The notes beneath the pieces were generated by a model. It had not been told where the DNA came from. It made no database searches and worked only from the letters and a program-made list of their open reading frames with translations. From the sequence record MH460460.1: DNA of 64,000 nt, one strand, 5' to 3'. Positions 31,027 through 36,779 of the stretch are shown here, piece after piece. The first letter of the stretch is position 1. Each line of letters opens with the position of its first letter. Both the position numbers and the translations under genes were made by a program.

Positions 31027-31488
31027 ATGAACGAAATTCGTATTGATCGTCCGATAGTTCTCGATTTAAATCCACCTCGCAGAATCACTGTGCGCAATTG
31101 CTATCAGGCTTTGCAGCAACTCACTATCATCTATAATGCCGAAGTTGGCTATGATGATCCGGTTGATATTGCGAATGATCGTGCTTACGCATATCACACG
31201 GCTTTGGTTCCGGATAAAGATATGCGCGAATGGTGTGCGTTAATGCGTCAGTGGAGCGTTATCGATCCAGACACAAAGCAACGTGTATGGGTAATGTATT
31301 TCGATATACCTACCAACGTTACTTTTCAAACGTGCGCAGATCTTTGGAATCAGTATGTCAAACGCGCAACTGAATCCATCCCTTCCGTGCGCATGGAAGA
31401 AATGTGTAAAGTCTTTCTTGAAGAGACAGATTTCATGGAAAGCTATAAGGGGGAGAAACTCGATGTTGAAGAAAATAAAATTTGCTGA
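31027..31488 (+). CDS. Hypothetical protein
   Basis: 153 aa. Confidence 0.6.
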   Translation: MNEIRIDRPIVLDLNPPRRITVRNCYQALQQLTIIYNAEVGYDDPVDIANDRAYAYHTALVPDKDMREWCALMRQWSVIDPDTKQRVWVMYFDIPTNVTFQTCADLWNQYVKRATESIPSVRMEEMCKVFLEETDFMESYKGEKLDVEENKIC

Positions 31489-32302
31489 ATCTCTGCGCTA
31501 CTTTAAAGAAGAACGAGAAGAACAGCGTGCGGAAAAATTGGTTGGCCGTGAATTCAATTTTGAAAGCGGTCGCATTAACGTTCTGGTTGGCGAGAACGGT
31601 AGCGGTAAAAGTTCTTTACTGGAGTCTCTGGCTAAGAAAATTTTGGCGTACAATTACGGGCATACGCGCCTCGATGATCGCCTCATTCGTTTTAATGATG
31701 AATACTGGTCGAAAGAAAATCCGGATCGTTGGTACAGCGACGAACTCTATATGCCAGATGTTTCTCTTGAAACTGATTCTCCAATTTACGGCATGTACAT
31801 GTCGCCTGATTGGAAGCCGTGCGATGCTCTTAATTGGGCGCACGCTCTTTGCTACGGTTTAGGCAAAGAGGCAACGGATCATTTCAAACGCACGGAGAAT
31901 TTTTCTTCCGGTCAGGGTATGAGTAACGTGATTACGCATATCGCAATGGCGTTAAAAGAACGCAGCCCGGAAGTAAGTCTGGAGGAAGTGAAATATCACA
32001 TTCGCCCACAAGATGATAACCATCTTGCGAAGCGTGCGAAGTTTTTACAAAAGCTATTACCTCCTGCTGGAAGTAATATTGTTGCTATGTTTGATGAACC
32101 TGAACGCACTTTAGATTTAGGTTCGCAGCTTGTTTTCTGGCAACTGATGAATGACATTTCGAAGCGTGAGCACGTACAAATCATCGTTGCGTCTCATAGC
32201 TGCATTCCGTTAATGTCTCCGGATAAATTCAATTTCATTGAAATGACGGACGGCTACAAAAACAAACTGCTGAATATTACGGCAGACCTATCTTTCAAAT
32301 AG
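31463..32302 (+). CDS. ABC-superfamily (AAA_21-type) ATPase
   Basis: VLVGENGSGKS (Walker A), SSGQG (signature), MFDEPE (Walker B/D-loop), IIVASHS (H-loop); start ATG 31463. Confidence 0.85.
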   Translation: MLKKIKFAESLRYFKEEREEQRAEKLVGREFNFESGRINVLVGENGSGKSSLLESLAKKILAYNYGHTRLDDRLIRFNDEYWSKENPDRWYSDELYMPDVSLETDSPIYGMYMSPDWKPCDALNWAHALCYGLGKEATDHFKRTENFSSGQGMSNVITHIAMALKERSPEVSLEEVKYHIRPQDDNHLAKRAKFLQKLLPPAGSNIVAMFDEPERTLDLGSQLVFWQLMNDISKREHVQIIVASHSCIPLMSPDKFNFIEMTDGYKNKLLNITADLSFK

Positions 32303-33697: not shown

Positions 33698-34214
33698 TCT
33701 GATTGCTTTTCTTGTGTTGTGGATTACGTTTGGCGCGATTTTCGCTTTTATGGATTTCGTGGAAGCGCTCTATAAAAAGCTGCGTAAGAGAAGTCAATTG
33801 AGTTGGGTACAAACGTTTGTGTATCCTGCTCTGATTCTTATTCTCTGGCCTGTAGTGATAGTTACGTTAATTTTACAGGTGTGTTTTCCCAAAACGTTTT
33901 CGCGCTTGCGCCGCTGGCTGGATTTTAAAACGCGCTTCTATCCGGTTCCTCTGTATAAAAGCGCAGAGTTTGATCCTCGCCTATTGAAATCTAAGTTGTG
34001 CGAAGTATCAGTTATCGAATGGCAGAAGCCGGGATATCTATACGAAACAACTCTGGATCTTTACGTGTATGAAAACGTAAACACTGGATTGCTTCGAATT
34101 GCGATTAACTACTCTGAGTCAAGCGGCAAATATAAGTACGTGTCGCACTGGCAGACGTGGGTAGGGAAACACAATCTCTTTAACTCTCGACAAATTGAGG
34201 AACAAAATGCGTAA
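33684..34214 (+). CDS. Membrane protein (two N-terminal TMs)
   Basis: LIAFLVLWITFGAIFAFM and YPALILILWPVVIVTLIL. Confidence 0.65.
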   Translation: MDANNLIAFLVLWITFGAIFAFMDFVEALYKKLRKRSQLSWVQTFVYPALILILWPVVIVTLILQVCFPKTFSRLRRWLDFKTRFYPVPLYKSAEFDPRLLKSKLCEVSVIEWQKPGYLYETTLDLYVYENVNTGLLRIAINYSESSGKYKYVSHWQTWVGKHNLFNSRQIEEQNA

Positions 34215-34524
34215 ACTCTCGCTGGAAGAACTGCTCGACATTCGCAAAAAGCTGATCAAACTCGTTGATGATCGCCGCACAAAATTGTACGAGAAGGGGA
34301 AAGAAGATCCTAACCAAATGAATTGGTCGATCCGCAAAGTTCCTACTGCTATCAGCGATGCCTATGAAGATATTGGATTCCTGCGCGATCATATTTCGCG
34401 TCTGGATTACTTTATTGATATGCGCGAAGCCGACGAAGCAAAAGAACTTTCGGAAGAACGTTCGAAAGAGTTGCTGGACTCGCTGCCTGCGGAACTTCGC
34501 GAGGAAGCCGATGATACCGAGTAA
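34207..34524 (+). CDS. Hypothetical coiled-coil protein
   Basis: GAGG SD before ATG 34207. Confidence 0.6.
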   Translation: MRKLSLEELLDIRKKLIKLVDDRRTKLYEKGKEDPNQMNWSIRKVPTAISDAYEDIGFLRDHISRLDYFIDMREADEAKELSEERSKELLDSLPAELREEADDTE

Positions 34525-34834: not shown

Positions 34835-35210
34835 ACGAACCGAAGTTGTGAGCATGAGGAACGGCAATAACAACTTCGATATTCGAATAGATCGCCAAAG
34901 TAAGTGGGGGAATCGTCACTACATGAACGATGATTCTCCTACTGAAAGGGATCGAGTTTGCGACGAACATGAAAAGGAATTGTGGAAAAAGATTCACGCC
35001 GGGGATATTTCTCTGAGTGAATTAGAAGAACTCTACGGAAAAAGATTAGGCTGTTGGTGTAAACCTAAACGCTGTCACGGTGATGCGTTAGCTGAGGCTG
35101 CGGAATGGGCGCACCGATTAATGGTTATCCTGAGACGACTTAGAAGGAAAAAACGTGAAAGAAGAAAACAAACTCGCAAACGCTCTGCCAGAAATCAGCG
35201 AAGAAACTGA
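34815..35210 (+). CDS. DUF4326-family protein
   Basis: DIRIDRQSKWGN...ELYGKRLGCWCKPKRCHGDALAE. Confidence 0.85.
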   Translation: MLITGFRRTEVVSMRNGNNNFDIRIDRQSKWGNRHYMNDDSPTERDRVCDEHEKELWKKIHAGDISLSELEELYGKRLGCWCKPKRCHGDALAEAAEWAHRLMVILRRLRRKKRERRKQTRKRSARNQRRN

Positions 35211-36198
35211 TTACCCGCAAGCTATGTATTCGCATGTCATGCAGCCATTTTCGGATCGTGCGTTGCTTGGTGGCAAACAGTCCTTGAAAGATATTGCGAA
35301 GAAAGAATTCGAAAACTATCTGATCAAGAAAGGCGGCAAAGTTCCTCGCTCTGGCGTACCGTTCAAAGAATTTTTATCGTGGCTGCCTGTCCGTAAAGAC
35401 AACGAAGATTTCTTTACTATCGTTCACACGATGTTCTTCTGGAGTTTCAACCGACTCAAGCTGAACATCCCAGATGAAATCACGAAGCATGTGCTGGAAT
35501 CCGAAGCGCCAGAATTAATCCCTGCGATCATTTTGCGCCGTCTGCCTCAATGGAGTCAGTGGATTGGTTTCAATCTGAGTTTCAAAGATGATCTTGGAGT
35601 TGAAAACGCAACGGAAGTTTCTCACGGCGCATTCGTTTCATTCCAGAAAAATGAAGGCCGCGAATATCTGCATGTAGCTCTGCAAATCTCTGATACGGAT
35701 GAAGCGAAGATCACTAAAGAGAATTACATGTGGATTGATTTTAAAATCGATCTGATGCAAGACCGTCCTATTGATGCAACGGAGTTTGTTCAAACCAAAT
35801 CAAATATCCTCTCTCACCTTCCTAATGCCAGTGAAGTAATCCACCGCGCCAAAACTCACCTGATTAAAACTATTCTGTTCGTTGCTTCTATGGAACCTGC
35901 GGAACATTTGCAATCAGAGAACGCGGCTCCTGCGCCGGAACGCAAAGGCAAAACTTATAAGTTTAGGCCGCGTTTCTTCCCACGCGAAGTCACGGTTGGC
36001 GAAGAGTATCTTTCTACTATTCGTGAGTTTGACGAAACTGTAAAAAGAAATGGAGGCGAAAGAAAGGCGCATATTCGTTGTGCGCATTGGCATCGCTACT
36101 GGACAGGCAAGAAGGACAATCCGAAACTTATTCTGAAATGGGTTGCGCCTTGTATTGTTTCAGGAACTTCGAAAGAATCTACAGGAAGCAAAGAATGA
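35155..36198 (+). CDS. AcrVA2-like protein
   Basis: Collinear motifs with AcrVA2 as I recall it: IPDEI...LRRLPQWSQWI (AcrVA2 LDEEI...LNLPDWCVYV), ILFVASMEP (LLWLCVAEP), VTVGEEY (YQIGERL), KAHIRCAHWHRYWTG...LKWVAPCIV (RPHIRRGHWHGYWQG...VRWQPAVFV). Confidence 0.7.
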   Translation: MKEENKLANALPEISEETDYPQAMYSHVMQPFSDRALLGGKQSLKDIAKKEFENYLIKKGGKVPRSGVPFKEFLSWLPVRKDNEDFFTIVHTMFFWSFNRLKLNIPDEITKHVLESEAPELIPAIILRRLPQWSQWIGFNLSFKDDLGVENATEVSHGAFVSFQKNEGREYLHVALQISDTDEAKITKENYMWIDFKIDLMQDRPIDATEFVQTKSNILSHLPNASEVIHRAKTHLIKTILFVASMEPAEHLQSENAAPAPERKGKTYKFRPRFFPREVTVGEEYLSTIREFDETVKRNGGERKAHIRCAHWHRYWTGKKDNPKLILKWVAPCIVSGTSKESTGSKE

Positions 36199-36779
36199 AT
36201 CTGAATCCGGAAGAAAGTCGTCTGTATAGTGAAGCTGTTATTTTAGCGTGTCGCGCACATCACGGACAGTTTCGCAAATATACTGGCGAACCGTATGTGC
36301 TGCATCCAATCGAAGTAGCAGAAATTCTTCGCCGCCATGACAGAGGCATTAAAGTTATTTGCGGCGGTGTGTTGCATGATGTTGTTGAAGACACCGAAAT
36401 CACAAGCGCTGTTATTCAAACAATGTTCGGTGAAGAAATCGCAAACATTGTTGAAGGCGTTACCAATGTTTCGGAAGATAAAAGTCTTCCTCGTTATGTT
36501 CGCTTCTGGCGTAACGTCAAACATCTTGCGCACGCGAGCGAGCAAAGTCAGGATGTTAAATGCGCCGACATTATCAGCAACTGCCGCAACTTTCGTTTAG
36601 GTAATGAGAGTTTCACCGCGCAGTATATGGCAGAGAAAAGTATTGTTATCGAACATCTTTACGAAGCCGATTCCTGTCTGATTATGGAAGCAAAGGATGC
36701 AATTGAAAAGAATCTGTTTGGCATTCAGACAGAATTTCAATCGTGTGTTTCTAAACTCTGGAAAAATAAAACGGAGTAG
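36195..36779 (+). CDS. HD-domain (p)ppGpp hydrolase-like protein (small alarmone hydrolase, SpoT/Mesh1 type)
   Basis: AHHGQFRKYTGEPYVLHPIEVA, LHDVVEDT, FGEEIANIVEGVT, VKCADIISN; ATG 36195 overlaps the previous TGA. Confidence 0.85.
   Translation: MNLNPEESRLYSEAVILACRAHHGQFRKYTGEPYVLHPIEVAEILRRHDRGIKVICGGVLHDVVEDTEITSAVIQTMFGEEIANIVEGVTNVSEDKSLPRYVRFWRNVKHLAHASEQSQDVKCADIISNCRNFRLGNESFTAQYMAEKSIVIEHLYEADSCLIMEAKDAIEKNLFGIQTEFQSCVSKLWKNKTE

Follow-up and report, generated by a model that had tools for sequence, protein, structure and literature searches.

The stretch of DNA analyzed here, a window of 64,000 nucleotides (nt) from sequence record MH460460.1, corresponds with 100% identity to positions 1-64000 of the Dickeya phage vB_DsoM_JA13 (JA13), a jumbo phage of the species Salmondvirus JA11 with a circular record of 254,061 bp and D. 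solani MK10 as its isolation host. Within it lies the gene JA13_060, which carries the GenBank label 'hypothetical protein' and whose product is almost certainly a member of the AcrVA2-like protein family. A first-pass annotation, made from the letters of the window alone, had described at this place an open reading frame (ORF) of 347 amino acids (aa), had assigned it to a jumbo phage, and had noticed a collinear similarity to AcrVA2 of Moraxella. The ORF exists as described on the plus strand, and the phage source and the similarity both held up in the present analysis. The features of the gene and of its immediate borders are as follows.

35144-35148, plus strand: AAGGA, a Shine-Dalgarno-like sequence 6 nt 5' of the GTG, and also the left junction of a cassette swap
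35153-36182: the swapped segment, 1030 bp in JA13, with blastn breakpoints at 35152 and 36183
35155-36198, plus strand: the AcrVA2-like gene JA13_060, 347 codons and a stop, GTG start
35155-35439, plus strand: residues 1-95, the N-terminal helical region, specific to the jumbo-phage subfamily and part of a variable 'head'
35440-35994, plus strand: residues 96-280, the middle beta-rich region, which begins at W96 and forms the rest of the 'head'
35995-36165, plus strand: residues 281-337, the C-terminal 'tail', the most conserved block both in the subfamily (0.82) and family-wide
36070-36108, plus strand: residues 306-318, the core motif HIRCAHWHRYWTG, read from the window and placed by HMMER alignments

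The GTG start of JA13_060 is credible because the AAGGA lies 6 nt upstream, because the homologue at the metagenomic locus L008 has an identical GTG and an identical ribosome-binding stretch, and because the stretch from the GTG to the first internal ATG (35224) is kept in the relatives of the gene. Judged from the comparison with the L008 copy, which gives a ratio of nonsynonymous to synonymous substitution rates (dN/dS) of 0.11, JA13_060 is under purifying selection. The possibility that it is a remnant or a pseudogene was rejected on the basis of this ratio and the intact ORF. A search for a compositional trace of recent import gave a GC content of 0.43-0.45, the same as that of the flanks, and a search for promoters and terminators around the gene gave match counts equal to those in shuffled sequence, with no excess.

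When the JA13_060 protein alone was searched with phmmer against all chain sequences of the Protein Data Bank (PDB), AcrVA2 (7ci1_A) was the sole match (E=4e-4), with the C-terminal motif aligned. A profile made from JA13_060 and eight database relatives (nine sequences) matched AcrVA2 at E=1.4e-22, with the runner-up at E=0.32, and the match extends over about 250 residues (profile positions 76-326 against chain residues 71-317). The AlphaFold2 (AF2) model of the protein, with a mean predicted local distance difference test score (pLDDT) of 78.9 and a predicted template modeling score (pTM) of 0.77, runs from a helical N-terminus through a beta-rich middle to a beta-strand C-terminus, the same domain order as that published for 7CI1. 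The first-pass annotation had named the lack of a structural match to AcrVA2 as a result that would speak against its proposal. A Foldseek search of the AF2 model against the PDB instead returned three AcrVA2 chains (7ci2_A, 7ci1_A, and 7ci1_B) at E=1.6e-10 to 4e-9, with a probability of 1.0 and template modeling (TM) scores of 0.48-0.52, whereas the best non-AcrVA2 match had E=0.07. Near full-length homology and fold are common to JA13_060 and AcrVA2. As the only credible Foldseek match was AcrVA2, a nuclease or other enzyme fold was rejected for JA13_060.

The Pfam family PF26125, which bears the name 'AcrVA2-like', has precomputed matches to seven relatives of JA13_060 (P0001-P0007, 42-96% identity) and to one distant relative (P0008), and PHROG 6160, whose function is unassigned, matches JA13_060 over its full length (E=1.6e-46). 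Uncharacterised phage proteins of PF26125 and PHROG 6160, among them those of the Erwinia jumbo phages Y3, Yoloswag, Alexandra, and RisingSun and of the Dickeya phage AD1, are like JA13_060 by direct family membership. A scan with Pfam-A returned 0 families for JA13_060 and for the 96%-identical P0001, because the scanned copy of Pfam had no PF26125 model and not because homology is absent. Searches of NCBIfam and PADLOC gave no match to the JA13_060 protein, and those in BFVD gave uncharacterised phage proteins only, plus one dubious name ('putative mycothiosynthase').

Compared with AcrVA2 of Moraxella bovoculi (7CI1/7CI2), JA13_060 is similarly long (347 aa, compared with 323 residues in the AcrVA2 chain), is collinear from about its residue 95 to the C-terminus, has a like order in its three-part fold, and is also carried by a mobile element. 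In contrast to AcrVA2, it is found on a virulent-type 254-kb Dickeya phage rather than on a Moraxella element, it has no acrVA1 neighbour, and its hosts have no known Cas12a. The identity in the structural alignment is about 16%, and nothing in AcrVA2 or in the greater part of the family corresponds to about the first 75 residues of JA13_060. The C-terminal residues required for the activity of AcrVA2 have been kept. The C-terminal HIRxxHWH-type motif pointed out by the first-pass annotation is present as HIRCAHWHRYWTG, and H306, R308, and H311 of JA13_060 align with H286, R288, and H291 of AcrVA2; alanine at any of these three positions abolishes the activity of AcrVA2 (Marino et al., 10.1101/2022.11.29.518452). 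Family conservation was scored in an alignment that included 149 distant representatives. There, H306, R308, and H311 are each kept in 99%, and W312 (90%), H313 (96%), W316 (96%), and G318 (99%) are conserved too. Outside the motif, W329 and W96 are each conserved in 99%, and P123, P131, and G158 are conserved as well. According to the profile alignment, W96 is the equivalent of W79 in AcrVA2, where mutations of W79 and of D89 have a moderate effect.

Conservation is distributed unevenly along the protein. For AcrVA2 and for most of the 3561 family representatives, the alignment begins only at about profile position 76-81, and in the N-terminal blocks the residue found in the window is common to just 5-14% of the distant representatives. 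Residues 1-95 are all-helical in the AF2 model. The middle region has a conserved block (P123, L130-P131, W133, and G158) and is variable elsewhere. In the eight-member subfamily to which JA13_060 belongs, three allele groups of the head (residues 24-280) can be told apart, with 34-47% mutual identity, and the middle region is 34-41% identical between allele groups, in contrast to 63-93% identity in the tail (residues 281-337). The pattern is mosaic: P0004 and P0005 are 93% identical in the tail and 39% in the middle region. It is also visible in the DNA, as the backbones of the loci L008 and L005 have 77-88% nucleotide identity, yet their detectable nucleotide homology ends at the start of the AcrVA2-like gene and returns in its last 170 or so nt. 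As far as can be read from these alignments, a conserved tail joined to divergent, mosaic heads fits a fixed effector module combined with a swappable recognition module. The putative target-recognition part is now delimited, with a variable mosaic head of residues 1-280 and a conserved tail of residues 281-337.

JA13_060 forms an accessory cassette with exact boundaries. In blastn, JA13 and its sister phage JA33 are collinear as far as window position 35152, collinearity returns at 36183, and JA33 has 481 bp in place of the 1030 bp of JA13. A tblastn search with the JA13_060 protein gave no match in JA11, JA33, or JA29. Over a 25-kb region surrounding the locus, JA13 shares 96.7% identity with JA11/JA33 at 96% coverage. 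Because the sister phages replace it, the gene is dispensable. Both junctions of the swap fall within ribosome-binding stretches of the flanking genes; at the left junction, a purine-rich stretch shared in the alignment with JA33, JA29, and L008 ends at the AAGGA, after which the sequences diverge. The replacement slot has the following positions in the sister phages.

L002 4159-4612: replacement slot in JA33
L003 4193-4646: replacement slot in JA29

In JA11, JA33, and JA29, the replacement consists of two small genes, one for a 71-aa Phage_zn_bind protein (E=6e-24) and one for an 81-aa protein whose matches to RelB (E=0.004) and ribbon-helix-helix (E=0.06) models are weak and below the cut-off. 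The Phage_zn_bind gene is unannotated in JA33. In JA29, the '(p)ppGpp synthetase' label seems to have been placed on the 81-aa small protein rather than on the HD gene of that phage.

The AcrVA2-like gene sits in a run of small same-strand genes, and its two direct neighbours overlap it.

34854-35210, plus strand: DUF4326 gene, 118 aa, unannotated (Pfam E=4.3e-21; phrog_464 E=2e-28)
36195-36779, plus strand: JA13_061, an HD_4 (SpoT/RelA-hydrolase-type) phosphohydrolase, 194 aa (Pfam HD_4 E=2.4e-17; phrog_990)

The DUF4326 gene fills the gap left by GenBank between JA13_059 and JA13_060, and the part encoding its basic C-terminal tail extends 56 nt into the AcrVA2-like gene. The gene is also found in JA33, in JA29, and at the loci L005-L009. 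Its tail differs between the sister phages because the breakpoint of the JA33 swap falls inside it. On the other side, the start of the HD_4 gene and the stop of the AcrVA2-like gene share 4 nt. The order DUF4326, AcrVA2-like, HD_4 recurs at L005 and L006, where the AcrVA2-like copy is 47% identical to that of JA13, and at L008 (85-87%); at L007 (64%), HD_4 is called adjacent and a DUF4326-like sequence is detectable upstream. This slot is unlike that in Alexandravirus, where the family gene is located three genes downstream of a RecA-like gene. At more than 30 other family loci, neither DUF4326 nor HD_4 lies beside the AcrVA2-like gene. We considered HD_4 as a family-wide partner and rejected this idea, as the adjacency was found only in the Salmondvirus-like lineage. 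The HD_4 gene stays in JA11, JA33, and JA29, which have no AcrVA2-like gene, and it is absent from the more than 30 loci mentioned; therefore, the adjacency is a matter of synteny within the lineage rather than of a functional pairing across the family. JA13_061 is annotated as a 'bifunctional (p)ppGpp synthetase/hydrolase', and it matches HD_4 and HD hydrolase domains only. By its domain content, it looks like a small stand-alone alarmone-hydrolase-type protein, and its annotation appears to be overstated.

The family to which JA13_060 belongs is large and widely dispersed. A search of the family profile against 1.84 billion representatives gave 3561 AcrVA2-like clusters at E<=1e-3, 1964 at E<=1e-10, and 41 at E<=1e-30. 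Among deposited phages, 84 records contain a homologue detectable by tblastn, mostly Erwinia jumbo phages of about 260 kb; among the matches listed, all copies other than that of JA13 are less than 31% identical to JA13_060. Its close relatives (47-96% identity) are known from metagenomes only. In IMG/VR, copies occur on jumbo contigs as well as on contigs of 14-80 kb, and a few plasmids, some of them conjugative, carry weak homologues (tblastn, 22-31% identity). All of these plasmid matches are named 'hypothetical protein', with the exception of one unannotated record; none of them is named FinQ, nor did any other search of this analysis yield a match of that name.

Much of what these findings point to has been described before for other members of the family. 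Marino et al. reported that about 1,800 AcrVA2 homologues are spread over a range of mobile elements, plasmids and megaphages among them, as a rule without Cas12a and mostly in taxa lacking it, and proposed that they may have other targets (10.1101/2022.11.29.518452). The same authors named FinQ an AcrVA2 homologue with a conserved C-terminus and a divergent N-terminus, and noted that it lowers the mRNA of a target other than Cas12a, the F-plasmid transfer genes (10.1101/2022.11.29.518452). FinQ is, therefore, a precedent for retargeting within the family. However, unlike FinQ, which is plasmid-borne and directed against F transfer genes, JA13_060 is phage-borne, and the kinship of the two rests on that paper. 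Proteins clustering with AcrVA2 were also found in the huge-phage survey of Al-Shayeb et al. (10.1101/572362), and an AcrVA2-like gene has been annotated in a paper on a Shewanella phage. Thus, the occurrence of AcrVA2 relatives in large phages of hosts without Cas12a and the idea of retargeting are already published, and JA13_060 adds one member. The first-pass annotation had proposed that the family is a general co-translational knock-down system; this is plausible, although as a novelty the proposal was anticipated in print (10.1101/2022.11.29.518452, 10.1101/572362, and PF26125). New here, as modest additions, are the precise exchange of the cassette among sister isolates and the mosaic pattern in which variable heads are joined to a conserved tail.

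According to a 2026 review, AcrVA2 associates with ribosomes and polysomes via its C-terminal part, and a cellular enzyme is recruited for mRNA decay; AcrVA2 itself is reported not to cleave the mRNA. The C-terminal part is needed for mRNA down-regulation, and the degradation machinery is called 'unknown' in a 2026 review. If JA13_060 acts in the same way, its tail would dock the protein on translating ribosomes, its head would bind a specific nascent N-terminal peptide, and a host RNase would then be recruited, so that the one target mRNA is destroyed. We consider it moderately probable that this mechanism is conserved in JA13_060 and that, at the same time, its target is not Cas12a. The second part of this proposal stems from two observations: the Dickeya strains surveyed have no type V-A system, as the CRISPR types recorded in Dickeya zeae are I-E, I-F, and III-A only (PMC8864124), and the head is unlike that of AcrVA2. 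In this respect, the suggestion of the first-pass annotation that the protein has another target in a Cas12a-free host appears reasonable. By analogy with FinQ, the more likely target would be some other defence protein of the host or a protein encoded by a competing mobile element.

Several points weigh against this proposal. The mechanism is transferred from a protein that is about 16-23% identical. The superposition on AcrVA2 is moderate overall, with a TM score of about 0.5 and a root-mean-square deviation of about 8 A, and the AF2 model was built on the nine-sequence alignment, with four of the five models having a mean pLDDT of 63-70. D89 of AcrVA2 faces a proline in JA13_060, where an aspartate follows one residue further on. 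The contrast between head and tail could reflect relaxed constraint on the head instead of diversified specificity. Furthermore, the gene is absent in JA11 and JA33, and the host range of JA11, JA13, and JA33 has been reported as identical (PMC8472413); therefore, no phenotype is linked to it.

There are other ways to account for the gene. It could be a genuine anti-Cas12a protein with a function orthologous to that of AcrVA2, kept for rare host strains with a type V-A system. The shared family and the retained C-terminal residues important for activity would agree with such a role, and AcrVA2 is known to tolerate Cas12a orthologs that have diverged strongly, since the N-terminal peptide that it reads is short and conserved (10.1101/2022.11.29.518452). 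However, about 75 N-terminal residues are unrelated to those of AcrVA2 and the head as a whole is only weakly similar, the CRISPR types of the surveyed Dickeya do not include the type required, most homologues reside in taxa without Cas12a, and the three head alleles in closely related phages are hard to square with one conserved target peptide. Taken together, these observations make an anti-Cas12a role very improbable. A weapon against other elements, comparable to FinQ, which would lower the transcripts of co-resident plasmids, prophages, or superinfecting phages instead of those of a host immune system, overlaps with the explanation that we prefer, since the mechanism would be the same and the target class alone differs. 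In its favor, family members are found on conjugative plasmids as well as on phage contigs of small and large size, and JA13_060 is dispensable on the isolation host, but nothing within the window points to a particular competitor, and as a reading in its own right we find it rather unlikely.

A different kind of alternative is that the family fold does another biochemical job, in which the cluster of conserved His, Arg, His, and Trp residues would be a metal or active site acting on RNA, ribosomes, or a small molecule, maybe together with HD_4. It is true that the biochemical role of the cluster has not been established even for AcrVA2, and that the adjacency of the AcrVA2-like and HD_4 genes with its 4-nt overlap is kept in JA13 and three metagenomic relatives. 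Nevertheless, the HD_4 gene remains where the AcrVA2-like gene is missing and is not found with the family elsewhere, Foldseek revealed no enzyme-like fold, and AcrVA2 does not itself cut mRNA, all of which render this alternative improbable. The preferred explanation, silencing of a single mRNA other than that of cas12a through its nascent peptide, may be taken one step further. In Salmondvirus-like jumbo phages, the protein could be a modular silencer, in which recombination joins a constant ribosome-docking tail to three or more head alleles that look unrelated, each reading the nascent N-terminus of a different protein of a host defence or a rival element. We put this forward tentatively, as a possibility that we would not favor at present. 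If it were true, the family would amount to a system for mRNA knock-down that is addressed by peptides and can be reprogrammed in nature.

As the general idea has already been published, the value of the JA13_060 finding is practical. The annotation of the gene can be upgraded from 'hypothetical protein'. The removal of an mRNA by reading its nascent peptide has so far been characterised for one protein, and if the mechanism carries over, JA13_060 would be another phage protein that removes a single mRNA of a host or competitor in this manner. In addition, JA13 and JA11/JA33 are existing isolates that differ naturally at the cassette, and a comparison of gene expression between them could reveal a target other than Cas12a.

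Two genes further upstream deserve mention. JA13_053 (31463-32302, plus strand) encodes a 279-aa ATPase of the ABC/AAA_15/AAA_21 type, and metagenomic relatives keep it upstream of the ASCH gene. In PADLOC, it matches the defence ATPases AriA, PtuA, and GajA, for the most part within the P-loop region. JA13_058 (34207-34524, plus strand) has a weak match to the H-NS N-terminal domain (E=5e-4; 20.2 bits against a curated cut-off of 24.5) and may be a small coiled-coil protein.

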